This document shows positions 2,172-56,245 of a stretch of DNA of 64,000 nucleotides, one piece after another; the first letter of the stretch is position 1, and the number at the start of each line of letters is the position of its first letter. The translations under genes were made by a program, and so were the position numbers. The stretch spans positions 197,695 through 261,694 of the forward strand of contig VRVR01000019.1 of the NCBI GenBank assembly GCA_009859145.1, written 5' to 3'. Source of the stretch: Andalucia godoyi And28. Lineage: Eukaryota > Protista > Jakobida. The notes under the pieces were generated by a model. The model was given only the letters and a program-made list of their open reading frames with translations, did not search any database and had not been told where the DNA came from.

Positions 2172-2305
2172 TGATGGAAAAGCAGAAAAAGCAGAAGAGA
2201 AAAAAGAAAAGGAAGTAAAGAAAGACCAAGGAATTTTCCCGCGAAATCACAACTACGACAGACGTATTGTGTGTTGACTTTTTGTCGCCTGTGTCCTGCG
2301 GGATG

Positions 2306-4306
2306 TCACATGACGGGACAGTACTCCTTCTTGATCAGTCCTTTCTTCAAGTACTGAATGAAACTAGGTTCTTCGGTTTGTACAGTGGCATTGAACACTA
2401 CTTTCGATTGTTCCTTCCCGGAACCGCCAACATGTCGAGACGACATTGTGATGTCGTTATGGTGCATTTCCAATGCGCCGTCATTGCTCAATGATTCGGG
2501 AAAAGCAGAAGGTTTGCCTTGTGTGCCTCGGAGCTTACTGGGGTCTTCCACAGGCATTCTTTTAACCAGACTCTGCGGCACAGGTAGACGGACAGCCTCA
2601 AGAGATGTCATGGTGGAGGAAGCCGGTCTGCTATCAGAAGAATGCGTCTTGAACCGTTTTGGGGTGGGACTGTCGTCCGAGTCGCTCTCCTGGCTGACAA
2701 TCGTCATCTGCGAGTCGATGTCTCCCATAGCACGAAGATCGTCAAGCAGACGTGCATCTTCTTCGAAAGAGTCCGAGTACACGATGACCGGGGGATCATT
2801 TGGGTCCGCTGCCAGACGAAGGGGAGCTGTCTCCGCCTCTTCATGACGGGAATGTCCCGCCGTACTGGAGCGCGCGGGAGAAAACTCGACAGGCTGATGC
2901 CTCCTTTTTGGCGGCCTTTTGAATTCCTTGTCCATCTTCACGAGCGTTTCCAGTCTGTGACCGCGGACGGCAAGGAATGCTTCTTTCAGATCCGCGTTGC
3001 GAGAGGCCATGGTATCTTGCACCGTCACCGGCAGTCGCTGACGGATCTTCGCCCAAATTTCCTCGATGTTTTCCACGACGTTGGAAGACGGAAACAAGTG
3101 GCGAATGGAATAGCCGCTGCGCGTAAGACCAATGACATGACGCGGTCGAATACTATCCACAAAGGACAAGAGTTCAGAATATGACGAGTGGATGGAGTAA
3201 GGAACGCGGAAGACGTTGTACATTTGTCCTCCATCTACCATGAGACACTGTGTTGCGATATGAGCGTCGTCAGTGTCGTCGACATCGAAATCGGCGATGG
3301 CCGCCAGACGATGGGTGTCGATGGCGTTTGAAGATGATGATCCGGATGTGCACGCCCCCCGTGCTCCCGTCGCAAACAGCTGTCTCCATACTTCTGATTT
3401 CCTGATCTGTCCATGGGTTTCGCTGGGGGAAGCCTTTTGTGGATACGCAGGAGCAATGTCCGGCAAAATCGACGACTCGCTGCGATGCATCCATCCAGAC
3501 GGGACGATTGCAACCACAGTCTGTCCCATACTGACTGCCAGTTTTTTTATGTTGGCACGAGAGACGTTTCGTCGAGGAATCACCAGCAGTCTGGACTCGT
3601 TGACATTGGTAGTGAAAACGTCGGGAAATCCCAACAGCTTGAGGCATTCGAAGCGCTCATGGTCGACGGCAACGAGGGTCTGGAGGGCTTCGGCTAGTTC
3701 AACTAACAGCTCTTCTTTTCCCAACGAGTCAATGCCGACGACGAAGAAGGTTTCTGGGTCGAACTTCAGCACCAAACTCCGTATTTGCTCCAAGCACTCT
3801 GGCTGCGACGGGAAATCGTGCACGGGATCGAGGAAGGTGTCGTCGAGAACAAGCAGATCCACACCACGGAGGAATGGATTTTCTTCAATCATCTTTGGAA
3901 TTTGCGCGCGAAAATCGCCAGTCAGCAGAATCCGCCCAAAGTAACCTTCGAGGTAAAACATGAGGGCACCAGGAGCATGATTTGCATCCAAAGCTCGAAG
4001 TTTCATAAACTCGATCCCACAGGCATCGACGCAGATCCTTTCGTCCTTTCCGATTTCGACAGTTTGTATGTAGTCGTCGGAAATATCAAACTTCCTTTGG
4101 AGCAGTAGTTTCGATTTCAGGGAGCAATAAATGATGCCAAAGTTCCACCGATTGCACAAACCTGCAGTGTGATCAGCATGAAGATGCGAAAGCAGGTAGA
4201 CGCTGACTCCTTCCGTATATGCGAAACGATCCACACATATTGGAGTACCCGGTATTCGTCCATTCCAGTTCATATTGCTGCCTTCTGCTACTGTGTAAAA
4301 TTCCAA
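2306..4306 (-). CDS. DCLRE1B: SNM1-family metallo-beta-lactamase/beta-CASP DNA cross-link repair nuclease, Apollo/SNM1B-like
   Basis: ICVDRF, LSHLHADHTAGL (HxHxDH), DANHAPGALMF, TGDFR, DDTF and VPYSIHSSYSEL motifs, followed by a disordered C-terminal tail. Confidence 0.82.
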   Translation of the reverse strand: MEFYTVAEGSNMNWNGRIPGTPICVDRFAYTEGVSVYLLSHLHADHTAGLCNRWNFGIIYCSLKSKLLLQRKFDISDDYIQTVEIGKDERICVDACGIEFMKLRALDANHAPGALMFYLEGYFGRILLTGDFRAQIPKMIEENPFLRGVDLLVLDDTFLDPVHDFPSQPECLEQIRSLVLKFDPETFFVVGIDSLGKEELLVELAEALQTLVAVDHERFECLKLLGFPDVFTTNVNESRLLVIPRRNVSRANIKKLAVSMGQTVVAIVPSGWMHRSESSILPDIAPAYPQKASPSETHGQIRKSEVWRQLFATGARGACTSGSSSSNAIDTHRLAAIADFDVDDTDDAHIATQCLMVDGGQMYNVFRVPYSIHSSYSELLSFVDSIRPRHVIGLTRSGYSIRHLFPSSNVVENIEEIWAKIRQRLPVTVQDTMASRNADLKEAFLAVRGHRLETLVKMDKEFKRPPKRRHQPVEFSPARSSTAGHSRHEEAETAPLRLAADPNDPPVIVYSDSFEEDARLLDDLRAMGDIDSQMTIVSQESDSDDSPTPKRFKTHSSDSRPASSTMTSLEAVRLPVPQSLVKRMPVEDPSKLRGTQGKPSAFPESLSNDGALEMHHNDITMSSRHVGGSGKEQSKVVFNATVQTEEPSFIQYLKKGLIKKEYCPVM

Positions 4307-4678
4307 ATGTCACAGAAAACGATGATCCAGCCACTCAGTAAGCGTGTGATTCTTTTGACACCAGTCTTACCAGAAGTTCAGCACCAAGAGCGACAGAACA
4401 AACACCAAAAGAGAACACTTTGCGTTTTAGGTGCGTCAGCAATCAACAAAATAGTTCCCCGCCCCGCAACGATGCCTTTCACTTTCGGCGGGGTACCGAC
4501 ATCTACAGTCAGAGGGTGTACGACAAGTGAGGCGCACTGACTGGGTTCCCCCCTTCCCGGTGGTGATCAGTGGTCAGTCCGTGGACGCCTGCGGCCTGCC
4601 AACGGAAAAAGGTTTGCTATTCGGCAGTGAGCTATATATATTCTATTATCATACACTAGGTGATACATGCATGCAGGA

Positions 4679-6818: not shown

Positions 6819-8324
6819 TTACTCGCCTTGCCCCATTGAAAATCCTGGCTTTCCATCAAAGAAATAAAGATTCTCTGTCTTGATCACATCGACGCCACGA
6901 GAAGCCAAGCATTCCAATAGTTTCACAACCTGCGCATACGGAAGAGGAGAATTGTCCATTGAACGGAATCGGCATCTCCAATGATCCACTGTGAACGTCT
7001 CGGGATATCCGTCTGGCCACACCTTGACTCCGCGATTCGTGATCAACTTCAAGCCGACGTCTTTGCACGTTGTTGTGGAACTTGTCAGGATGTTTGCAAG
7101 GTCGGAGGGCGTGCCGTTGGTGTATTCCACGAAAATATCCACTCCCATGAGTTCCTTCTTCTGCAGCTTGGCAGATGGCAGAGCGGCCCTATCTGAGAAC
7201 AGCGACGGGCGCGAGCTGGTCGAGTCCGGAGAGAGCGCCGCTCCAGAGTACTTTAGAGGCTTCAAAACTCTGGGAAGCATTTCCAACTCCGAGTTTTTCG
7301 CAACCGCCGCAGCAAACTCGCGGGTTCCTACGGCCTTGTCTTTTGATTCCGCAATGTCCACCGTTCGGATACCAGATTCCACTGTAGCCAACCAAGCATT
7401 ATGCAGCCGCGACGCAACGTCGGCTTGCCCCAGATGGTTCAACATCATCACAGATGAAAGAAGCATTCCCGAGGGATTCGCAATGTTCTTTCCCGCAATC
7501 GTCGGCGCTGACCCGTGCACAGCCTCGAACATTGCATGCGTAGCTCCGATATTCGCAGACGCGCCGATGCCCACTGACCCGGAAATCTCGGCTGCAATAT
7601 CGGAAATAATGTCTCCGTAGAGGTTGAGTGTGACGATGACGTCAAACGCCGTGGGGTTGTTTGCCAATCGCGCTGCGCCAATGTCGATGATCATGACGTC
7701 CTGCTGAATTTCCGGATACTGCTCTCCTACCTCGCGGAAGACGCGGGTGAACAGGCCATCGGTTGCCTTCATGATGTTGTCCTTGACCATGCAGGTGACC
7801 TTCTTTCGGTTGTTTTTCTTGGCATAATCAAACGCGTACCGTACAATCCGTTCGCAACCAGGCTGGGTGATTAGCTTCAGACACTGAATCACCTGCTGTG
7901 TCTGGCGATGCTCAATTCCAGCGTACAAGTCCTCTTCGTTTTCACGAATGATGACCACATCCATGTCCGGAAACCTCGTTGGGATTGCAGGCGAAACCGC
8001 AACCACTGGCCGCATGTTGCAGTACAGCCCAAGGGTTTTCCGCAAACTCACATTCAGTGATTTGTACCCGGAACCTTGCGGCGTCGTGATCGGCCCTTTA
8101 AGAAGGACCTTGTTGCGGCGGATGGTGTCCCATGCACTCGGGGGAATTCCAGACGAATGCCCAGCCAAGTATGCTTGCTCACCCACAGATACTTCCTGAA
8201 TGTCCAGCTGTGCACCAGAAGCTTTCAGACAGTGCACTACTGCGTCGGAGAGCGAAGGACCAATGCCATCGCCACGCGCGAGGGTGATGACGGGACGCGA
8301 AGTTGAGGAGAATCGTCGAAGCAT
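6819..8324 (-). CDS. icd: Isocitrate dehydrogenase, long bacterial type, with a predicted mitochondrial presequence
   Basis: GDGIGP, LLKGPITTPQGSGYKSLNVSLRK, IRENEEDLYAGIEH, NLYGDIISD and FEAVHGSAP motifs; C-terminal extension ITNRGVKVWP..PETFTVDHWRCRF; N-terminus MLRRFSSTSRP. Confidence 0.9.
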   Translation of the reverse strand: MLRRFSSTSRPVITLARGDGIGPSLSDAVVHCLKASGAQLDIQEVSVGEQAYLAGHSSGIPPSAWDTIRRNKVLLKGPITTPQGSGYKSLNVSLRKTLGLYCNMRPVVAVSPAIPTRFPDMDVVIIRENEEDLYAGIEHRQTQQVIQCLKLITQPGCERIVRYAFDYAKKNNRKKVTCMVKDNIMKATDGLFTRVFREVGEQYPEIQQDVMIIDIGAARLANNPTAFDVIVTLNLYGDIISDIAAEISGSVGIGASANIGATHAMFEAVHGSAPTIAGKNIANPSGMLLSSVMMLNHLGQADVASRLHNAWLATVESGIRTVDIAESKDKAVGTREFAAAVAKNSELEMLPRVLKPLKYSGAALSPDSTSSRPSLFSDRAALPSAKLQKKELMGVDIFVEYTNGTPSDLANILTSSTTTCKDVGLKLITNRGVKVWPDGYPETFTVDHWRCRFRSMDNSPLPYAQVVKLLECLASRGVDVIKTENLYFFDGKPGFSMGQGE

Positions 8325-9140
8325 TATCCTGTGGAAGACAGTTATCGATCTCGAGGTCTGTTTTCCTTTTCCCTTTCCTTTTCCTTTTTTTAAACTTTTT
8401 GTTTAATGTCTTGTTGTTGTCGTCTTTGCAATTGTTCACGGTTAGTGAAAGGCTGCTTTTCAGACGAGATTCTTTATTTAAAATAAGAAATAAAGTAAAA
8501 AAACCAGATTCCGTGTGAAACACACAGGAAAGGAGGGGTTTTGAAATCTGCAGATCTGGATGCCCTTTAGTACAACACTCGGCCACTCTCCCTACACAGT
8601 ACACACGCGCACCCCTGGGTGGGCCGACTCCGATTTGCCGCGGTCGAACGAACGAGCAGCCAGAGAACGCAGCCAGCGGAGCACTTCGCAGGAAACACTG
8701 TTGCCACATTTGGAAATTTTTCAGCAAGCACTCGTCAATTCCTGTCAATCAAATGTGCTGTTGATGGGGAAAAAAAGATTGAAACAAGCGGCCATTCTTG
8801 CCAGTTTTGTGTCACTCTGCGGTTTTTCGGGGAAAAGTAGAATCGGTAGAACTCCTCAAAGAATAATAATCGAAAGAAAAATAGTCGTAAAAAACCGTTT
8901 AATTTTAGAGACTCGTCCTCAAAAACAAAATTGAAATTAAAATTTAAAAAAAAATAGTAATTCATAATCATAAAAAACAATCAAAACCAAAGGAGGGGAA
9001 AAGACTCGACTTGGAAATGGAGAGAGGGGAGAACCGCAAAACTGATAAAGAAAACGAGGGTATACGAAAGCAAAAATGGAAAACCGGGTCCGAAGAAAAT
9101 CAAAAACACAGAGGTAAAATAAAAAAAAAACATCTCCTTC

Positions 9141-16720: not shown

Positions 16721-17827
16721 TTACTTTCGAGAAGATGAGCAGGTGTCCTTGGCGGTGATCGCTGAGCTGAAGGCCTGCCACAGCGTGGCATCCTTGATGC
16801 AAACGGTTCCGCCCCCGCGGTTTGCCTGAGACGTCATGTGGTTAATATCTCCGATGCATGTGATTCCCTTGGCGGAACCCTGGGAAACTGCCCATTTTGC
16901 ATGGTCCTGAGTTTCCTTGAATGAGTCAGAGCCGAGCTGCACTTCCTGGACATTGACGACTGCATACTTGCAAGACGATCCGCAGCACGACGGTTCGTAC
17001 GGTCTCATCCACGTCTCGACGTACAACGGGGTAGTGAAGTACGGTGCAACAAGATCTTCGTACAACATCTGGGCCCACTGTTTGTTCTTCGCAAACGAGA
17101 TGAACTGTGTTCCGCTAGTTCCTTCAATGATCTGCACATGCGATCCAGCCTGCGAGATCGACTGTCCAGCAATCACTTGCGCGGTATTCGGAAGCGTGGA
17201 TGCGAGAGAGGACGGCATGTTCGAGTCATAGACCTGCGGCTGGTTGTACAGCAATTGCTGTCCAACATCGTCCAAACTGGAAGCAGAGACTGAAATGCAC
17301 AGATACGTTTGACCATAGTCAACTTCGTCGGCCGGGAATGTAAAAGATGATGCCTCGGACGGACCCTGAGGGAAGCGAGGAGTCGACTGGACAAGCCAGA
17401 ATCCACCTGACGCCGAAAACGCAAACACTCCCTTTGTGTGTCCCTTTGAAGAAGACACCTTGCCATCCGGCGTCTCATCGTTGTAGAAGACCCATCCGGT
17501 GCCTGAGGGCTTCTTGTAGACCACATTAAGAGTCGTCGCAAGTGCCGAGTCTGCGTCGGTCAGCACATGCGAGGACATCCGCAGCGATGACGAAGACGAT
17601 CTTGAATCCGTGTACGCATAGTCAAATCCCTCGGAGCCCACAGAAGATCCGTGGTGAGTTCCGGACGTCACGTTGAACACTCCCTTTGACGAGCTGCGAG
17701 GGAGCTTGTACATGATCCACCACTCAACAGAAGACCCGGAGTCGCTGATGCACCCAAGACTCGACGCCTGGACCGCCGCAAAGCAACAAGAAACGCTCAG
17801 AACAAGCAACAATAACATGCCGCTCAT
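16721..17827 (-). CDS. DNASE2: Deoxyribonuclease II (secreted/lysosomal)
   Basis: Signal peptide, VEWWIMYKLP, GHTKGV, GFWLVQSTPRFP, DHAKWAV and CIGDINHMTSQANRGGGTVC. Confidence 0.92.
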   Translation of the reverse strand: MSGMLLLLVLSVSCCFAAVQASSLGCISDSGSSVEWWIMYKLPRSSSKGVFNVTSGTHHGSSVGSEGFDYAYTDSRSSSSSLRMSSHVLTDADSALATTLNVVYKKPSGTGWVFYNDETPDGKVSSSKGHTKGVFAFSASGGFWLVQSTPRFPQGPSEASSFTFPADEVDYGQTYLCISVSASSLDDVGQQLLYNQPQVYDSNMPSSLASTLPNTAQVIAGQSISQAGSHVQIIEGTSGTQFISFAKNKQWAQMLYEDLVAPYFTTPLYVETWMRPYEPSCCGSSCKYAVVNVQEVQLGSDSFKETQDHAKWAVSQGSAKGITCIGDINHMTSQANRGGGTVCIKDATLWQAFSSAITAKDTCSSSRK

Positions 17828-17942
17828 GATAATAGCCCTAGTGCAATCGCCCTGAATATTTCCAATCCAAATTCTTTTCTAATTGAAGAAGAAAAAAAGG
17901 ACTTTGTTAAATAACAAGAATGTGAAACGAATATATCGGATA

Positions 17943-18735
17943 GGGCACACCCATTCAAATCAATGCAGGGATTCCCAGGAACGAGAGGCGTGAAATGCCC
18001 GGCAGAACCAGACATTTTCAATCTTCATGAGTGCCTCACGCGAGGACTCCAGCTCGCTTGCACTGGGAATACCGCGTGGATTCCGACACAAGAACCGCGG
18101 TCAGATGGACAGTTCTCTGTGGCGCAGTGTCTCAACCCCCCGGGGCACGAAGCGCTCACGACGCAACACCAGTTTCTCGCGCATCCGCATGCGCACCCTC
18201 TTCGGGTGTTGGTGGAACCGAAAAAAGGGTGCCACCTGGTCGCGGGTAGCCAGACGGTCCAGCAGCTTGACCGTCGCCTGCTGCTTCTTGACACGACTGC
18301 GGAATCGGCGGCTGTTATGTCACGAGTGCGCCGCGCCACGTGATGAACGGCAAATCGTTCATCCAGATCGGGATGGCGCAGCCGCTCTCGGAGTGCAGCT
18401 TTCACCACCTGCACCATTGGGTTCTGAAAATGTGCAAGTATGAAACCGACAACGTGTGGCGAAGTGTGAGGAGGATGTGGTGCCAAATAAAAACGGTGAA
18501 ACATCAAAATACGAACGCAGCAGTGTTTTATGCAATATTTTATTTGACACAACGAAGTCCAAGGTGAAACGGGAGAAAGGAAAAAGGAAAAAGGGAATGG
18601 GTTCAACAAACAAAATCCAAGGGACGAGAGACAGCGGATAACAGACAAAAGGGAAAAGGAAACGAGAGAGAAACGGAAAGGGGAGCGGCTTAGGAATTGC
18701 TGGAATTTCTGAATTGAATTTTGGGGAAGCGCCCT
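17943..18735 (-). mobile_element. Family A copy 1: non-autonomous Fanzor1-like element, internally deleted
   Basis: Inverted near-duplicate of 47269-48249. Flanked by TA at 17941-42 and 18736-37, with imperfect terminal inverted repeats. Carries fragments MVQVVKAALRERLRHPDL (ATG 18417), RRFRSRVKKQQATVKLLDRL and GLRHCATENCPSDR. Confidence 0.75.
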
Positions 18736-19344
18736 TACTATTTATTATTATTATTATTATTATTTGGCGAAGGCAGCAAGCATAGCTTCTGGTGCACGAA
18801 ATTGATCGCATTATTTTCAGGCTACGATCTTTTAAAGGTATATCATGATGTATTACCTGTGTTTATTTTGTAGAAGACTCATTTGTTCTATTGCCACTTC
18901 TGTTTTCCTTTTTTTTGTCCGAGTTGCAACATTGATGATGCATCGTCAGCGAAAGGCTCTGGAGAGCTCGCAAGCCTATATTTTTTTTACCGGAGTTCTC
19001 GCTCCACCTCGCAAAGACGACATCAGGGCACAGGACTGACATAGCAACAGAAAATGATGCAGAGCTGCAAGTGCATGTGACTTCAACAGGGAAAAACTCG
19101 TCAATGTTTCCTCGTCGTAAACAGCAGTCTCGCAAAACGGAATGATGTCTGCAAACCTTGGCTGCACAAACTCGGACACAGTGTAGTGTGCGATCCTTTC
19201 CGATGGGATCGGGGGATGGCAGCGCAGGTCTTCTAATCCGCGCACGTTGATATCAGCGTGTCCAGCACGGCGCACGTATCGCTTGAGGAATATGAAATTG
19301 GGATAGACCAGCGCCCAGAATACCAGTATTTGCGCGCTTTTTTC

Positions 19345-20250
19345 TCAGCATCTTTGCAAAGGCGTCGCATCGCCAACATTGTCGTCATCGTCATCGAGAA
19401 GTGCTTGCCTATTTCGCTTTCTATTGAGTGCATTCTCTACCGAAGACGACGTGTTCTCTTCCACAACCCGTCTTCTTTTGGCTGCCGTAGCATCAGAATC
19501 ATCTTGCGCCTCCGTCGACTGTTGCGAGCTGTTAAAGCCAGCAGGAGCACCAAGCCTGCATGAAAAATGCTTGACACTGTCCGCTGGTCGACCTTTAAAT
19601 GACGGCGACAGCGTGACGTCCCTGTTTGCCGGTCGAGGTGCCGGAGAAGCAGTTGGAGACCCCTTATCCTCCGGGACGTACTGTGTTTTTGGTTTCTTGG
19701 ACGGATTTCCAAGCCTTTGCATCGGCCGAATTGGAGCCAATGATCCGTGAATTGAAGCTTCGATCTTCTTTTGCTGCTCCACAAACCGAGTCCATTCCTC
19801 TTCAGTCATGTCATCCTGAACAGGTGCAATATCCTCGTACACATCCTCATCCTCGTCCTCGTCCTCGTCCTCATCATCATCATCACCACCACCATTCATC
19901 CTCCCACCTTCTTCCGTCGACGCACCCTCGTCTTCACAAGATTCATACTCTCTGAGTGCGGCGTCCCCGCGACTGCCGTGTTTTCCATCCTTCTCTGGAC
20001 CTCGATTCCCTCGGTGTCTCTGCTCGTGAGCAATGCTTTTGTGCATCGACAGCTTGAGCCCTGCAATGCGATCCGGGTCGTTTTCTGTTCCCCGCACATC
20101 TTCCATAAGATTACCAGACATGTACCGGTCAATGGTGTTCTCAAGAGACCCAAACGTCAGCAGATGCGCTTTGAGCCACGGTATCGCCCCAGGAATAAAG
20201 TTCGGGAACATCGCTACAAACAACTGCATCTGCTCATCAATTTGGCTCAT
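19345..20250 (-). CDS. CUE-like ubiquitin-binding domain protein; the frame continues 123 codons past a single TGA to 18976
   Basis: N-terminal QLFVAMFPNF...SLENTIDRYM helical motif, then acidic and disordered sequence. TGA at 19347-19345 is followed by an open frame ending at TAG 18976. Confidence 0.6.
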   Translation of the reverse strand: MSQIDEQMQLFVAMFPNFIPGAIPWLKAHLLTFGSLENTIDRYMSGNLMEDVRGTENDPDRIAGLKLSMHKSIAHEQRHRGNRGPEKDGKHGSRGDAALREYESCEDEGASTEEGGRMNGGGDDDDEDEDEDEDEDVYEDIAPVQDDMTEEEWTRFVEQQKKIEASIHGSLAPIRPMQRLGNPSKKPKTQYVPEDKGSPTASPAPRPANRDVTLSPSFKGRPADSVKHFSCRLGAPAGFNSSQQSTEAQDDSDATAAKRRRVVEENTSSSVENALNRKRNRQALLDDDDDNVGDATPLQRC

Positions 20251-20625
20251 CGCTGCTGCAAGAGGAGATCAACCTAGAACCTCGAATTTGCGCGAATTCT
20301 TTTTTTTTATTATAAATATAAATATAAATATAAAACCAAATGAAGAAAAAAAGCACATGATAAATATACGAAAAGTCGTCGTTCAGAACCCAAAAAATAA
20401 AATTTGCAGTACGGTTGACAGTCTAGTGTGCATTGAACATCAAACAAACAATATCATGTGCTGGAAGTTTGTCGATCTGTCTAGAATTTCTTCATTCTTC
20501 ACGTTTCTCCCAAATAAGAGCAAAGCATGTGGCTTGGATCTGTCTTCGGTAACAGCTTAGCCGATGACCAATAATGATCCATGACTTGGCGAGCGGATTC
20601 CGGAGCAGTCCTTCCAGTTTATTTG

Positions 20626-20829
20626 ATTAACATCCCTGCAAAGAATCCGGAGGGGCCGTTGTAGGTCTCACGCCCCATCTTTCGCGGGCGCCCTACGCGA
20701 GAGTCCAACTCGCTTGCGCCAGGAATACCTGACAAGGTGTGGTATGGCGACGTAGTGCCAAATAAAACTGTTAAATATCAAAATATGAACAGCAGTGTTT
20801 TAATTAATGTTTTCTTCTGACACAACGAA
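20626..20829 (-). mobile_element. Family A copy 3: diverged ORF-less mini (ghost) element
   Basis: 20731-20829 aligns to the 5' subterminal region of A1/A2 (gtgccaaataaaa..tcaaaata.gaac..agcagtgtttta...tgacacaacgaa). 20687-20729 and 20626-20648 align to the A 3' region (ggtattcc..cgcaagcgag.tgga..ctcgcgt; gga.tc..tgca..gat.t.aat). Confidence 0.7.
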
Positions 20830-20831
20830 CG

Positions 20832-21375
20832 CCTACATTATCCACTGAACATGCATATCAACGAGTAGACATGCATATTCAATCTTGCATCCCGTTGCTC
20901 GGAAGGGGAAAGGCCCCAACACGCCTCACGGTGTTCTTCAGATAGATGTTCCGCGCTCCGTTCTCAATCTCGATCAATCTGCGAGCCACTTTTCTCAGCG
21001 TGACACGTTGTTCCTGAGAAAGGTGCATTTTGATTCCGACGGCCCTAGCAGCAGGCGCTTTCGTGTCCTCAGTTGCAGCGCGGTTGATGCACCTGGAGAT
21101 ACGAGAAGAAGAGGCGGTAGGAAGACGGTGGGGGTTTGCGGCTGCGACACTTCTCGCTTCACGTGCTGCTTTCCCAACGCTGCATGGGCTCCCGCATTGT
21201 TCGACGCAGAGTGCCTGAACATGTGCTGCACACGTGGTCATCGTTTCTCAGTTCGTATATCCATCCCCGATGCGGACCGTCGGTTCTTGTCCCAATTGCA
21301 GACATTCGAGAAACCGTTCAGCGCCCTGGATTTGGGCGCCAACACCCAAAAAGAAGAAGAAGTCGGGAGCCCACC
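20832..21375 (-). mobile_element. Family B copy 1: non-autonomous Fanzor2/IS607-TnpB-like element
   Basis: 20830-21148 is an inverted duplicate of 51905-52203. Encodes RAVGIKMHLSQEQRVTLRK (OrfB_IS605 HTH/WED start) joined to IDRD/ENGARNIYLKN (RuvC-III). GG occurs at both proposed junctions on the minus strand. Confidence 0.75.
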
Positions 21376-21571: not shown

Positions 21572-22786
21572 CTATCCTTCTGGCTCCTCTGTTTCGAAAT
21601 GAGGATGCTGATGGAGATGCGTTCGAACATCATCTGGAACGGCAGCTCCTGATGCGTCCTTTTCGTGAATCACCTGCAACATTCTCTTACCGCTCATCTG
21701 AGTGGTGAGTTCCCTCCCAAACACAGAAGCATGAACCACGGCCACGGACCGATCGACATTTGTGTTGTCCACGAGTCCCCAAGGCCGAGTGCAGTTCTTG
21801 GACCGCAGGCACAGTTCGGTTTGAATTCTTCGAATTGCATCAATGTGTGCAACATACCTGTTCATTCTCGGTTCCAGAGTCATGTATTTTGCTCTCGTCG
21901 CAAATCTTTCTCGATGCTTCTCTGCATTGGATATGTGAACCACAAACGGCACGACAAAATCAGCCTCCATTTCAGCGGGGATCATCTCCTGAAGGACATT
22001 CGGCAGCAAGTGCACTCCTTCTACAATGATTGGTGTCCGTCGCTTGACGTGGCTCTGAATAAGTGGCACAAGAGCCTGGAGCACCATTCTGCACTGGTCC
22101 TCATAATCCTGGACATTCGACTCATATGTCGATGCAAACAGATGCTGCGGTGCATTTGGAATCGAGCGCAATGCGTGACGAATCACATCGGTTGAGATAA
22201 TCGTCGTGATTCCAATTCGAGCAGCCAACAACGCAGCCAGCGTCGACTTTCCACACCCGGACGTCCCACCAAGTAGAATCACGATGGGACGTCTCCGAGC
22301 TTGAATTTCCACTGCCAGCTCTATGTCTCTCATGGGATAAAACAAGCTGTGAGCAGAGAGTGTTGCGGCAATCAATCTGCATAGCAGGGCTGCCCTTTCC
22401 CGACTCCTATTCTCCCGCTCTTCTCCACTCTCGGCACCGCCGTCGACATCCCCCTTTGAGGAAGACTCTCTTCGGTGGCGATGGTGGTGGTGGTCATTAT
22501 GATGATTCTGATCGGTGCCGTTTGCACTGATGCTTGCATAGGAGGAACCAGCGGAGTTGGAGTACGACGCCGTACAGTGGAACGAGTCATGGTCTTGCGA
22601 GTCGTAATCTTCAGGAACAACATCCACAGGAAATGCATCCACCATCGTCTCTGCTCGGTGAGGCTTCACACCAATCAATGCAAATATCTGGCGAATTGCA
22701 AACGGATGAACACCCATTCTTCTCCCTTCTTTTCTTCTCTTTTCGCTCAGCAAACGTAAGTCGCTGCTGAACACTAGCCCGAGCAC
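21572..22786 (-). CDS. 2-phosphoglycerate-kinase-like P-loop NTPase (LPA1 homolog)
   Basis: ILLGGTSGCGKSTLAALLAARIGITTIISTDVIRHALR, IIVEGVHL, HRERFATRAKYMTLEP and VDNTNVDRSVA. Confidence 0.85.
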   Translation of the reverse strand: MLGLVFSSDLRLLSEKRRKEGRRMGVHPFAIRQIFALIGVKPHRAETMVDAFPVDVVPEDYDSQDHDSFHCTASYSNSAGSSYASISANGTDQNHHNDHHHHRHRRESSSKGDVDGGAESGEERENRSRERAALLCRLIAATLSAHSLFYPMRDIELAVEIQARRRPIVILLGGTSGCGKSTLAALLAARIGITTIISTDVIRHALRSIPNAPQHLFASTYESNVQDYEDQCRMVLQALVPLIQSHVKRRTPIIVEGVHLLPNVLQEMIPAEMEADFVVPFVVHISNAEKHRERFATRAKYMTLEPRMNRYVAHIDAIRRIQTELCLRSKNCTRPWGLVDNTNVDRSVAVVHASVFGRELTTQMSGKRMLQVIHEKDASGAAVPDDVRTHLHQHPHFETEEPEG

Positions 22787-25933: not shown

Positions 25934-26470
25934 CCCCCTGGGTGTGGTTGTGACCCTTCTGTTTTTTTCCCATTCTTTGAAGGACTTCTTGATTCATTGC
26001 ACCGATTGGCGTGTGATGACGGACCTCGTTTTTTCGTATTCCCCATTTCCCTTTCCCCCGCTTCTCTCTTTTTATCATTTCCTTTTCCTTTTTTCTTCTT
26101 CTTTCTTTTGTTGTGTCTTGTTTGTATTTTCCAATTTCCATGTACACGAGATTCATAAACACAAACCTGAGCCGTCAGGTTGCGAACATGCATCCGCCCC
26201 GTCCCCCTCCTTCCCCACCGACCAGCCGTTTCTCTTTCATCCCAGCAAACATGCCGCGACTGCATCTGCATGCTCCCTCTCGCTACTGCTGCGCTACGAG
26301 GCTAAAACGCGGTACGTATTTTACAATCCATAAACACTGCAATGCTGCACAAAGTAACAGGAAGGCGACGTAGCAACAGCAAAAAACCAAGAGCAAACGA
26401 ACAAAATAATAATAAAAAACAAAAAAGCAAATCAGAAAAAAGGCTGGTCGAGAATCAACTCCGGACGGAA

Positions 26471-47053: not shown

Positions 47054-47268
47054 GAAGCAGTCTTTCTGAAGAAGCAAAAAGAAAAGAAAGAAAGAGAGAC
47101 AGAGACAGAGAGACAGAGAAACACAAGTCAAGCAAGTAAAGATAAAGGATGAATGCTTAAATGGATAAGAATGGTGATTAAAACAAGCATTTGAGGCTAT
47201 TTGGGCTCTGCGAAGAGGCCTGACAAAGTGACGGGTTCGCGCTCGCCTTTTGGGAGTGTTTTACCGTA

Positions 47269-48249
47269 CGAGCGTTTCCATAAAATTCAATTCAGAAATT
47301 CCAGCAATTCCTAAGCCGCTCCCGTTTCCGTTTCTCTCTTTTCCTTTTCTCTTTTCCCTTTTCCCTTTTTCCCTTTCTCCCGTTTCACCTTGGACTTCGT
47401 TGTGTCAAACAAAATATTGAATAAAACACTGCTGCGTTCGTATTTTTGATGTTTCACCGTTTTTATATGGCACCACATCCTCCTCACACTTCGCCACACG
47501 TTGTCGGTTTGTCTGTTCCGTCGGTTTCATACTTGCACATTTGCGGAGCCCGATGGTGCAGGTGGTGAAAGCTGCGCTCCGAGAGCGGCTGCGCCATCCC
47601 GATCTGCACGATACCCTCCTGAGTTGGGTGAACGATTTGTCGTTCATCACGTGGCGCGGCGCACTCCTGCTAAACCACTACCTCGCCCTTGTGTTGGAGA
47701 ATGACCTGCCCTTTCCCGATTTCAAGGATTCGTTCTGTTGTAGCTGTCGCAGTGTTGTCGATAAAAATGTCGACAACGACACGGACTTGTCCGTTTATGT
47801 GTAACCGACGGTTTGTTTCTTTTATTCTTTTGTTCGTAAAATAAATCAGATAGGTTTTATTATTTTAGGTGACATAACAGCCGCCGATTCCGCAGTCGTG
47901 TCAAGAAGCAGCAGGCGACGGTCAAGCTGCTGGACCGTCTGGCTACCCGCGACCAGGTGGCACCCTTTTTTCGGTTCCACCAACACCCGAAGAGGGTGCG
48001 CATGCGGATGCCCGAGAATCTGGTGTTGCGTCGTGAGCGCTTCGTGCCCCGGGGGGTTGAGACACTGCGCCACAGTGAACTGTCCATCTGACCGCGGCTC
48101 TTGTGTCGGAATCCACGCGGTATTCCCAGTGCAAGCGAGCTGGAGTCCTCGCGTGAGGCACTCATGAAGATTGAAAATGTCTGGTTCTGCCGGGCATTTC
48201 ACGCCTCTCGTTCCTGGGAATCCCTGCATTGATTTGAATGGGTGTGACC
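47269..48249 (+). mobile_element. Family A copy 2: non-autonomous Fanzor1-like element
   Basis: TA flanks at 47267-68 and 48250-51. Fragments: MVQVVKAALRERLRHPDLHDTLLSWVNDLSFITWRGALLLNHYLALVLENDLPFPDF (47553-), HNSRRFRSRVKKQQATVKLLDRL (47873-47941) and LRHCATVNCPSDR (48057-48095). Confidence 0.8.
48130..48249 (+). ncRNA. Putative omega-RNA scaffold of the family A element (equivalent region 17943-18065 in A1)
   Basis: Position between the last nuclease motif and the right end; hairpins GCGAG..CTCGC and TGAAAATGTCTGG-ttctg-CCGGGCATTTCA, enclosed by GAGGC/GCCTC. The boundaries are inferred. Confidence 0.5.
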
Positions 48250-48623
48250 TAAGAGAACGGCGGGAAAAACTACGACAGGTTCATTGCGGTGTCGTTTATT
48301 TAGCCCTAATGTATTCATGTATGTACATCGATATGCATATAAGAATCGATTAATCCGTTGGCAACTCTTTTCCGTTACTTTCAGTTTTTTGTTTTTCCTT
48401 TTGTTTTTCCTTTTTGTGTTTTCTGCTCGTTCGTCGTTACTGCCCCCATAGCTATTTTCCTACACTCTCACACGCATTCAGGACAGAGCACGTGGGCTTT
48501 GTTGTGGATTTTTCTGCGGTGCTGTCTTATTATAGCTATTGTTGCAGAATTTGTGTTTCCGAGCGTTTTTTTCAGCAAGAGCGACAAGAAGGATCTTTTT
48601 TGGTGGCTGTTGAGAGAATTACA

Positions 48624-50008: not shown

Positions 50009-50623
50009 TTAATCATCGGCCTCTTCCTTTTCCATCTCAAGAATGTGTGCCCACTGTTCATCGGTCACTTTCTGGATGCTCAATCGGGACTGTTTGACAA
50101 GCGACATTCCAGCCAGAATGGGATCCGTGGGAGCTCGTTCCTTGATCTCCTTCAAGCTTACGAGCCGTTTCAGCTTCCTGACGAACCGAAAGTCGACTTG
50201 ATACCAGATCGGATTCGACTCTCTTCCTTCGCTTCCCGCGTGATAGTATCTGTGCTTCTTGTCAAATGCTGCCAGATCCGGATATGCTTCGCGGCAGATT
50301 TCTGCGATCCCGACAATTCCTGCATCCTTGGAATTGGAATGATAGAAGAAGATTTCCTGGCCCATTTTCATGGACCTGAGATTCTTCGTAGCCTGGTAGT
50401 TCCGGATGCCATCCCACCGAAACACACCTTCTTTTTCAAGCAATGAGAATGGATACTCGGCCTCTTCCGACTTGATCAAGAAGTGATTGACGTCGCCGAG
50501 CATTCCTGCTGCTTTTCCAATTGCAGATGGCACCATACCGACCGCAGCCTTCTCGCGATCGTCGTGGATGCTTCGAACTACGGATGGCGGCAATGACGAT
50601 GTCTTCCGACGAACGGCACCCAT
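50009..50623 (-). CDS. EVE-domain protein (THYN1-like)
   Basis: HFLIKSE, WDGIRNYQATKNLRSM, FFYHSN, GIVGIAEI, YPDLAAFD, WYQVD and QSRLSIQKV. The start is taken at MGAVRR. Confidence 0.9.
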   Translation of the reverse strand: MGAVRRKTSSLPPSVVRSIHDDREKAAVGMVPSAIGKAAGMLGDVNHFLIKSEEAEYPFSLLEKEGVFRWDGIRNYQATKNLRSMKMGQEIFFYHSNSKDAGIVGIAEICREAYPDLAAFDKKHRYYHAGSEGRESNPIWYQVDFRFVRKLKRLVSLKEIKERAPTDPILAGMSLVKQSRLSIQKVTDEQWAHILEMEKEEADD

Positions 50624-50746
50624 TGCTGCTGCACGTAATATTTTTTTGCCTTTCTTCTTCTTCTTCTTCCTGTCGTTTGCAGAAGACGGGGAGGGTGAAC
50701 GGGCGGAGGCAAACGAACAAACGAACAAATTGACAAGAGCGGTTCC

Positions 50747-51409
50747 TCAATGTGGTGGATTCGTGGATGTTGTTGTGGTTGAGATACGACAGATGTCTCG
50801 CTTCACGGGACGACGACAGCTTGTCGAACGGGGGATGAGGACATCAGTAATGGTGCCCGTGTCGATGGCGTCGGTGGTCTCTGTTTGCATCTCCCGGATC
50901 TCTTGTGTGGTAAATGCGTAGATGGGAGCATCTTTGCGAAGATAGAGTGGGTGCTTGGGAGTTCCGACCATGGTGTAGCCAAAGCAAAATACCTTTTGTA
51001 AGCAGCCTATCCGTTTCAGCATTTCCTCGACTTGCCTCCCACGCTCCAGGAACACCCCGTGGTTTCCCCACGCAACAAGAATTCGATGCGCCTCAACGCA
51101 GTGCGATGCAATGTACGTGTCGTTTTGGGGGCCAACGGGATCGGTAACCGTCCGTAGACCTTTTGGATTGGTGGACCGCAATGCAAAGATGTTAACAGCA
51201 ATCATTGCTCCGCATCCCCATGTGCGTGCCAAGTCAATGGAGCGCCGGATCGTGGGGTCATCTTGAGTTTCGTCCGCCGTGCTGGGGTTCAGCATGATGA
51301 ACACAGCCTGCGGTTTGCTATCATCCCAAATCCTGTAAAGCACATATCGATACTTTTTCGAATCGTCAAACACCGCCTTTGAAACTCGGATATCTTTCTG
51401 CAGCAACAT
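50747..51409 (-). CDS. DUF1643-family protein (prokaryote/phage-type)
   Basis: KYRYVLYRIWD, FIMLNPSTADETQDDPTIRR, VNIFALRSTNPKGL, DPVGPQND, LVAWGNHG and GTPKHPLY. Confidence 0.9.
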   Translation of the reverse strand: MLLQKDIRVSKAVFDDSKKYRYVLYRIWDDSKPQAVFIMLNPSTADETQDDPTIRRSIDLARTWGCGAMIAVNIFALRSTNPKGLRTVTDPVGPQNDTYIASHCVEAHRILVAWGNHGVFLERGRQVEEMLKRIGCLQKVFCFGYTMVGTPKHPLYLRKDAPIYAFTTQEIREMQTETTDAIDTGTITDVLIPRSTSCRRPVKRDICRISTTTTSTNPPH

Positions 51410-55989: not shown

Positions 55990-56245
55990 GAAAGAAGGAA
56001 GGAAGGAAGGAAGGAAGGAGAAGAGGAGAAAAGAAAAGAGAAGAAAGGAAAGGAAAGAAAAGAAAAGAAAAGAAAAGAAGAGGGGAAAGGGGGGGAAAAG
56101 AGAGAAGAAGAGAAGAAAGGAGAGTTGTAGAAAATGATCGGGAGAGGATCAAGAACTAAACAAGCAAAAGAGGAAGGGAAAAAGGGAAAAAAGAGAAAAA
56201 AGAGAAAAAAGAGAAAAAAGAGAAGGAAGAAAAAGTGAGAAAAGA
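55925..56245. repeat. Polypurine tract: (GA)n, (GAAG)n, (AAAAG)n and (AAAAAGAGA)n, upstream of PTBP
   Basis: About 320 bp almost purely purine on the + strand. Confidence 0.9.

Follow-up and report, generated by a model that had tools for sequence, protein, structure and literature searches.

A probable Fanzor1-type ghost element in the genome of the jakobid Andalucia godoyi

The A1 locus and its copies

We analysed a stretch of 64,000 nucleotides from Andalucia godoyi And28 (contig VRVR01000019.1, positions 197,695 to 261,694; hereafter the window) and focus on a short repeat within it, A1, which we regard as the probable relic of a DNA transposon carrying a gene for a Fanzor1-type RNA-guided endonuclease. 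A1 is a sharply bounded repeat of 0.8 kb on the minus strand (window positions 17943-18735) with a TA on each side. Read 5' to 3', the left TA (18737-18736) is followed by AGGGCGCTTCCCCAAAATTCAATTCAG, a reading frame opens with an ATG at 18417-18415 and translates to MVQVVKAALRERLRHPDL, further coding fragments encode RRFRSRVKKQQATVKLLDRL and FVPRG / GLRHCATENCPSDR, the latter pair lying in two frames with a 1-nt frameshift between them, and the right side runs through ...GGGTGTGCCC into the second TA (17942-17941). The ends form an imperfect inverted repeat of 34 nt anchored at the termini, with 23/34 positions complementary, a score matched by 0.1-0.2 % of random 40-mer pairs from the window.

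We examined ends and flanks on two complete copies, A1 and a second copy termed A2, and TA is found at all four ends, the base preceding it being a G (AG-TA in A1, CG-TA in A2). Given the palindromic nature of TA, and with no empty site seen, a target-site duplication is indistinguishable from a terminal dinucleotide of the element, and the TA may be either. A first-pass annotation, made from the letters of the window, had proposed both the TA flanks and the imperfect terminal inverted repeats, and our analysis agrees on both points; the minus-strand strings and coordinates it quoted are present in the sequence, apart from a left end written with five A's (CCCCAAAAATTC) where the sequence has four.

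A2 (47264-48251, plus strand) lies 29 kb from A1 in the opposite orientation. The similarity between the copies breaks off sharply at both ends, the flanks being unrelated. Identity amounts to 98.7 % over the 3' 383 nt (17941-18323 in A1; 5 substitutions) and to 95.3 % over 363 alignable nt of the 5' part (18324-18738; 17 differences, substitutions only), and these rates differ (Fisher p=0.008). The higher conservation of the 3' part may be due to constraint, to gene conversion or to a recombinant origin. Five of the 5' substitutions fall within the outer 17 nt of the left repeat, and this divergence of its tip suggests A1 to be immobile now. Past the ATG, A1 lacks two stretches of A2 (20 nt, A2 47605-47624; 202 nt, A2 47667-47868), the two deletions noted on first pass. 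A2 is itself heavily deleted: it retains 62 ancestral N-terminal codons within an open reading frame (ORF) of 83 amino acids and is without all three RuvC motifs. This loss, as well as a third remnant at 20664-20829 (A3), goes beyond the first-pass annotation.

The family extends to other scaffolds. Coding fragments of the element match six A. godoyi gene models in EukProt/NCBI (ANDGO_07022, 02339, 05534, 03127, 03149 and 04702) and one more genomic copy, with identities of 54-100 %. The genomic copy, L002 (VRVR01000063.1, 10001-10780), is truncated at both ends and contains, in order, ...RRRFRGRVKKQQATVKL..., FIIAYGDTSF, IDEYCTTKKCC and GLRHCATVNCPSDRRCVGRDANAAMNI. The first 18 codons of A1 are 100 % identical to the gene-model fragment P0001 (tblastn), and the A1 fragment 18232-18311 shares 95 % identity with L002 10221-10301. 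The sequences TDGV[SL]VSF and VGIDPGR.NILTAFDG are present in ANDGO_05534, 03127 and 03149, and GLRHCATVNCPSDRRCVGRDANAAMNI is present in ANDGO_03127 and 03149. A cluster look-up added one further fragment (P0007) and zero new loci. Within the window, A3 consists of ~80 nt of leader (81 % identity to A2) joined directly to ~60 nt of the 3' end, the latter being nearer to the L002-type copy (51/61) than to A1/A2 (33/38); A3 is older than A1 and A2 and more eroded.

Ancestry of the coding fragments

An exhaustive HMMER search with ANDGO_05534 of 1.84 billion representative proteins returned four matches only, one of them being P0005, a full-length relative of 687 amino acids from the Logan assembly SRR12487036, which is tiled in order by all A. 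godoyi fragments at 35-45 % identity; the first 18 codons of A1 align to its residues ~38-55. Its gene is located at 2173-4236 of a Logan contig of 4660 nt (L001, 54 % GC) and all motifs are present. Besides the A. godoyi fragments, P0005 is the one family member detectable among these 1.84 billion proteins, and the search returned no intact A. godoyi protein. Run against metagenome and viral contigs, the C-terminal profile retrieved no relatives; P0005 is the sole intact relative found. As a pyrimidine tract and an AG stand just ahead of the second in-frame ATG of the P0005 gene, the called N-terminus may be too long. The L001 DNA has no similarity to the ends of A1 and A2, and the lone inverted pair bracketing the gene (15 nt, 87 %; 2100-2114 / 4338-4352) is not separable from chance pairs.

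Searches of the PDB with profiles of the family point to Fanzor1. The family profile gave a single match, Guillardia theta Fanzor1 (GtFz1, 9cer; E=4.8e-4), with the TDGVS[VI]SF strand and the GxDPG...IL..DG RuvC-I motif aligned in register. For the C-terminal profile, the top two matches were SpuFz1 (8gkh, E=0.0063) and PpFz1 (9cf0, E=0.037) over ~134 residues, with GD.S, DE[FY].[ST][ST]..C..C, GL..C...NC and RD..A..N in register. Single sequences likewise have Fanzor1 as best or sole match, GtFz1 for ANDGO_05534 (E=0.28) and PpFz1 for P0005 (E=0.6), the two matches falling in separate protein regions. In NCBIfam, a single model is matched, NF040570 (TnpB, RNA-guided endonuclease; E=0.0027 and 0.0051), and the alignment lies at its RuvC-III end; in Pfam the sole match is PF07282 (TnpB/Cas12f zinc-ribbon TNB domain; E=0.0038 and 0.0098). 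The similarity to TnpB/Fanzor profiles on which the first-pass annotation had staked its reading is seen with family profiles (PDB, NCBIfam, Pfam); in Pfam, the translated A1/A2 fragments, the ANDGO fragments P0001-P0004 and full-length P0005 on their own gave nothing relevant even at E<=10.

The motifs agree with this assignment. P0005 conforms to the Fanzor motif D-X(125,275)-[TS][TS]-X-X-C4-X(5,50)-RD (Bao & Jurka 2013, PMC3627910) with D406 ... S572-T573-x-x-C576..C579 ... C617....C622 ... R632-D633, and L002 reads TT-KK-CCAG ... HCATVNC ... RD, with a Gly in place of one Cys of the first pair. Fanzors have a rearranged RuvC-II, in which Gly/Pro occupies the position of the canonical Glu and a compensating Glu follows ~45 residues downstream (Jiang et al. 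2023, PMC10530073). In P0005, G533 (AYGD) is found at the RuvC-II position and E569 (DEF) 36 residues downstream, AYGD and DEF aligning to VVMGDWS and LLDEYKTS of SpuFz1. G533 and E569 match the rearranged catalytic site of Fanzors, their putative catalytic roles being deduced from this alignment. Two segments of A1 had been assigned on first pass, and both assignments hold: RRFRSRVKKQQ..., read as the helix before RuvC-II, aligns directly ahead of the RuvC-II strand of SpuFz1 (VVMGDWS), and GLRHCAT.NCPSDR, read as zinc finger leading into RuvC-III, is the second Cys pair, followed by RDANAAMNI in fuller copies.

Taken together, the family very probably belongs to the TnpB/Fanzor superfamily, and its placement in Fanzor1 specifically is likely, a little less firmly so. 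The evidence for Fanzor1 ancestry is transitive but convergent, each direct match being weak.

Two observations concern the annotation of the gene models. KAF0852141.1 / ANDGO_04702, deposited as 'putative mitochondrial protein' and covering L002 10001-10516, is a frame-shifted fragment of a gene of this Fanzor1 family, and the 'hypothetical proteins' ANDGO_07022, 02339, 05534, 03127 and 03149 are more fragments of that gene family.

Decay, mobilisation and competing explanations

All three RuvC catalytic motifs have been lost from A1 via separate deletions. A large deletion common to A1 and A2 begins near residue 62 in the N-terminal region, ends at the RRFR helix and has taken the WED strand and RuvC-I. 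In A2 this gap is patched by ~140 nt of AT-rich filler (~47727-47868) including the palindrome TTGTCGAT-AAAAAT-GTCGACAA; this filler is matched nowhere else in the window and in none of the retrieved loci. In A1 only the last 12 nt of this filler are left (18312-18323), showing A1 to be derived from an A2-like form. We considered the AT-rich stretch of A2 as a GT...AG intron and rejected this, since L002 is contiguous across the right junction and P0001 and P0005 read through the left one, identifying the stretch as filler at a deletion junction. Deletion D1 (139 nt) removed IIAYGD at the RuvC-II position, IDEY with the compensating Glu and the first Cys pair; the RuvC-II position and the compensating Glu are thereby deleted in A1 as well as in A2. 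Deletion D2 removed 64 nt encoding RCVGRDANAAMNIRQCWLS (RuvC-III) between two copies of the 8-nt sequence GACCGCCG. Minor lesions are one extra G at 18141 and, in A1, also the 20-nt deletion after codon 18, and the open frame of 130 codons starting at the A1 ATG lies mostly outside the ancestral frame. The deletions have also destroyed the Fanzor motif in A1, and no nuclease can be made from it.

The decay is not private to A1. The junctions of D1 and D2 are common to A1, A2 and ANDGO_05534, and D1 is also found in ANDGO_02339; the same junctions at other loci indicate that a defective element was copied after loss of the nuclease. All three RuvC motifs together occur in none of the nine A. 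godoyi copies seen. A1 keeps both inverted-repeat ends around a non-functional nuclease ORF, as do ghosts in the sense defined for Spu-1, and dispersed copies have derived deletions in common.

This supports a model, to which we assign a probability of roughly 80 %, according to which A1 is a 'ghost', the inert and non-autonomous remnant of a small A. godoyi DNA transposon with terminal inverted repeats. We estimate the full-length parent at ~2.5-2.7 kb with one gene, which would encode a Fanzor1-type (TnpB-like) RNA-guided endonuclease of ~650-690 amino acids. Filler DNA and microhomology are the usual footprints of abortive gap repair, and because both the filler and the 8-nt microhomology are present here, the internal deletions would come from abortive gap repair after excision. 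Mobilisation would occur by cut-and-paste in trans, with a transposase encoded elsewhere recognising the inverted repeats and inserting the element at TA; Spu-1 of Spizellomyces punctatus and other Fanzor1-only elements are thought to move in this manner. A Tc1/mariner-like mobiliser, put forward on first pass as an inference from the TA, is a candidate. In its essentials, a non-autonomous, internally deleted derivative of a Fanzor1 element that has kept its ends, this is what had been suggested from the letters of the window, and it is now backed by the paralogues, the tiling of P0005 and the profile matches.

Several results weigh against this model. None of the matches to Fanzor1 or TnpB models reaches the curated cut-offs (E 5e-4 to 4e-2); the scores of 16-18 bits compare with cut-offs of 26.3 for PF07282 and 100 for NF040570, which define bacterial models and not Fanzor1. 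A two-row full-length profile gave no Fanzor match in the PDB, which marks the PDB matches as modest and profile-dependent, and full-length P0005 has no Pfam match. When P0005 was modelled with AlphaFold2 from 5 aligned rows, the result (mean predicted local distance difference test score 43.9, predicted template modelling score 0.25) was too poor for fold comparison, and Foldseek with this model (mean score 44) found, as was to be expected, no match in the PDB at E<=0.001. No transposase domain is found in any ORF of at least 200 amino acids in the window, none of the A. godoyi copies seen is intact with both ends, which leaves the ends of A1 and A2 without a master element to compare them with, and the TA may belong to the element instead of being a duplication.

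The best surviving alternative, which we consider unlikely, is that A1 and A2 still work as non-autonomous elements: their omega-RNA would load an intact Fanzor1 from elsewhere, with the 3' part under selection. A. godoyi would then have, or recently have had, a live and very divergent Fanzor1 system, in which the omega-RNAs of the ghosts guide an intact nuclease encoded, for example, on unassembled subtelomeric scaffolds; transposon-rich subtelomeric scaffolds were indeed left out of the assembly (A. godoyi genome paper, PMC7050145). The multiplication of the deleted form speaks for this alternative, as does the higher identity of the 3' part, which gene conversion or a recombinant origin explains equally well. 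The dimensions of the tail agree with it too: ~82 nt separate the ancestral stop position (18025-18027) from the right end of A1, compared to ~80 nt in Spu-1, where a 75-nt omega-RNA scaffold is located and 14-15 nt of guide are read from the flank (Saito et al. 2023, PMC10432273), and the scaffold of Fanzor1 elements includes the right repeat and the duplication (PMC10711439). The first-pass annotation likened A1 to non-autonomous Fanzor loci that keep their omega-RNA; on the ghost model, too, a putative scaffold would by its position fall within this tail, and the guide would be read from the flank past the TA (TCCGATATATTCG...).

The tail contains one stable 11-bp hairpin (17993-18017; AAAUGUCUGG-UUC-UGCCGGGCAUUU), which is retained in the divergent L002, where a G-to-A change turns a U-G into a U-A pair and preserves pairing. 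The structured 3' region claimed in the first-pass annotation is borne out by this hairpin and only weakly beyond it: compared to shuffled sequences, folding is not or marginally better (z of -0.32 for 240 nt and of -1.0 to -2.0 for 75-150 nt), and Rfam has no match in 17500-21200. Working elements are further opposed by the absence of a copy with all three RuvC motifs among the nine seen, of an intact A. godoyi protein in the representative search and of an undiverged left-repeat tip in A1.

Quite improbable is a parent gene that belongs to the TnpB superfamily without being Fanzor1, for instance a Fanzor2 or a TnpB lineage acquired recently from prokaryotes or viruses, in which case the likeness to Spu-1 would be mere analogy. 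The E-values for the NCBIfam TnpB model and the Pfam TNB domain are similar to those for Fanzor1 structures, and the placement in Fanzor1 was made from profiles and motifs. The PDB, however, also contains structures of TnpB, Cas12f and Fanzor2, and the matches obtained are exclusively Fanzor1 chains (GtFz1, SpuFz1, PpFz1). Fanzor2 is known in the discobid Naegleria lovaniensis (PMC10432273), but the protein considered here is long (687 amino acids) with an N-terminal helical region of ~300 amino acids and a GxDPG RuvC-I motif like that of GtFz1, and the element has inverted repeats and TA flanks, not IS607-type ends.

We reject as hardly conceivable an origin without transposition, in which segmental duplication or gene conversion spread a decaying host gene family and the repeat and TA flanks are coincidental. 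In its favour, only two complete copies were inspected, the inverted repeat is imperfect (23/34) and no empty site was seen. Against it, the boundaries of A1 and A2 are sharp and fall on identical element positions, the two copies lying 29 kb from each other, oppositely oriented and between unrelated flanks; TA is found at all four ends, at least seven more copies are dispersed over other scaffolds or gene models, and the protein family is known solely from mobile elements.

Genomic surroundings, related systems and significance

The features of A1, A2 and A3 are compiled in Table 1.

Table 1. Positions of the features of A1 and of its copies in the window
Feature	Position	Strand	Remarks
TA, left (5') boundary	18736..18737	-	putative target-site duplication or terminal dinucleotide; A1/A2 similarity starts here
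Left terminal inverted repeat arm, AGGGCGCTTCCCCAAAATTCAATTCAGAAATTCC	18702..18735	-	23/34 positions complementary to the right arm
Pyrimidine-rich tract, 120 nt, 85 % C+T	18566..18685	-	length varies; A1 ~50 nt longer than A2
Conserved leader, CT tract to ATG	18418..18565	-	partly retained in remnant A3 too
First 18 codons of the ancestral nuclease gene, MVQVVKAALRERLRHPDL	18364..18417	-	start of the N-terminal helical region
N-terminal region continued (…NDLPFITWRGAL)	18324..18365	-	out of frame behind the 20-nt deletion
Last 12 nt, GTGACATAACAG, of the AT-rich filler	18312..18323	-	same filler as at the large deletion junction of A2
Fragment (R)RFRSRVKKQQATVKLLDRLATRDQV, helix preceding the RuvC-II strand	18232..18311	-	stops at deletion junction D1
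Fragment APFFRFHQHPKRVRMRM…RRERFVPRG, insert between zinc-finger Cys pairs	18142..18231	-	139 nt missing upstream
Fragment GLRHCATENCPSD(R), second zinc-finger Cys pair	18103..18140	-	frame-shifted by the extra G at 18141; stops at junction D2
C-terminal tail of the ancestral ORF, PRFLCRNPRGIPSASELE	18046..18102	-	64 nt lost just upstream
3' non-coding tail to the right end	17943..18045	-	candidate omega-RNA scaffold by position; holds the hairpin 17993-18017
Right terminal inverted repeat arm (reverse complement AGGGCACACCCATTCAAATCAATGCAGGGATTCC)	17942..17975	-	overlaps the flanking TA with its outermost base (1 nt)
TA, right (3') boundary	17941..17942	-	
Copy A2 including both TA flanks	47267..48251	+	47269-48249 without the TA flanks; layout as A1; deletions D1 and D2 in common
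Remnant A3	20664..20829	-	~81-84 % identity; ends not recognisable

A1 sits in a 1.5-kb spacer upstream of a DNase II gene and is oriented like it; 113 nt (17828-17940) separate the right end of A1 from the ATG of this gene, so that read-through from A1 would enter the 5' region of the gene; its left end adjoins an (AAT)n microsatellite (18739-18765). A2 likewise lies on the same strand as the next ORF, 162 nt upstream of it. The neighbours in the window are ordinary eukaryotic housekeeping ORFs (among them DNase II, Rad17, isocitrate dehydrogenase, ADA2, IFT, PFK2) in a compact, intron-poor arrangement. Other CT-rich tracts at 8357-8390, 26030-26095 and 56009-56216 resemble the pyrimidine tract of the element; such tracts may be common in intergenic or promoter regions of A. 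godoyi and not belong to the element.

Further observations on the neighbourhood concern minus-strand ORFs: at 50012-51409, an ORF with an EVE domain lies next to one with a DUF1643 domain, a pairing more familiar from bacteria; an ORF at 21575-22786 has a P-loop kinase domain of the AAA_33 / Zeta-toxin type; and the isocitrate dehydrogenase at 6822-8324 has a bacterial-type C-terminal domain (PF18324).

Fungi, algae, animals and giant viruses are already known to harbour Fanzor1 elements, along with ghosts of these that lack the ORF. Of the described systems, Spu-1 with its ghosts comes closest, and A1 is the same kind of object in another eukaryotic supergroup. Spu-1 has a length of 2.1 kb, one Fanzor1 ORF, inverted repeats of 30-33 nt and a TA duplication, and the S. 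punctatus genome contains 42 full or partial Spu-1 loci as well as 134 ORF-less 'ghost' loci that keep the repeats (PMC3627910; PMC10432273). The A. godoyi element resembles Spu-1 in its small size, with a Fanzor1 nuclease as the only gene of its proposed full-length form, in the terminal inverted repeats of ~30-34 nt with TA at both ends, and in the many partial or ORF-less copies scattered through the genome beside or in place of full ones. In contrast to Spu-1 from a chytrid fungus, the host is a jakobid (Discoba), and the resemblance of the protein to SpuFz1 is visible by profile only (E ~0.006). Ghost Spu-1 loci lack the whole ORF and have a conserved region of ~550 nt, whereas A1 and A2 still hold ORF fragments. 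The conserved CA upstream of the left repeat of Spu-1 is not present in A1 and A2, which have a G before the TA, a difference of little weight with two copies. Moreover, Spu-1 has intact copies and an omega-RNA, whereas the A. godoyi copies seen include no intact master and their omega-RNA would be putative.

Similar relations hold for other systems. The A. godoyi family shares TDGVS[VI]SF and the RuvC-I motif L[VL]G[IC]DPG...IL..DG with GtFz1 (9cer), and DEF-R-[ST][ST]..C..C, HGL..C...C and RD..A..N with PpFz1 of Parasitella parasitica (9cf0); both of these proteins are intact and biochemically active, whereas the copies in the window are dead, and identity is low (E 5e-4 to 4e-2). Fanzor1-only elements of the PUl-4 type (Bao & Jurka 2013) resemble A1 and A2 in having Fanzor1 only, TA flanks and inverted repeats for a transposase encoded elsewhere, but PUl-4 has exactly the repeats found in confirmed mariner elements, whereas the A1/A2 repeats are without a known matching transposase-bearing element. 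With the bacterial TnpB-only elements of the IS200/IS605 group, the family has in common the homologous nuclease core of RuvC-I, zinc ribbon and RuvC-III RD.NAA.NI, and a guide RNA would be expected at the 3' end; IS200/IS605 elements have neither inverted repeats nor duplications and use the Y1 transposase TnpA, in contrast to the eukaryotic-type ends of A1 and A2.

In the literature that could be searched, as full text and supplementary tables, we found no paper linking Fanzor to Andalucia or jakobids and no Fanzor survey listing either. New here is a very divergent Fanzor1 branch in a jakobid, a member of one of the deepest-branching eukaryotic lineages, the ghost kind itself being already known. 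Copies of the A1/A2 type record a stepwise decay of an element, with microhomology deletions, filler DNA and multiplication after loss of the nuclease, and this spread after nuclease loss agrees with a role of Fanzor other than that of the transposase. Re-annotation is due for several A. godoyi gene models, KAF0852141.1 among them, which represent pseudogene fragments of the element. If a live Fanzor1 system were present in A. godoyi, which we deem unlikely, this would extend RNA-guided Fanzor1 activity to Discoba and would provide a natural case of guide-only elements acting in trans.

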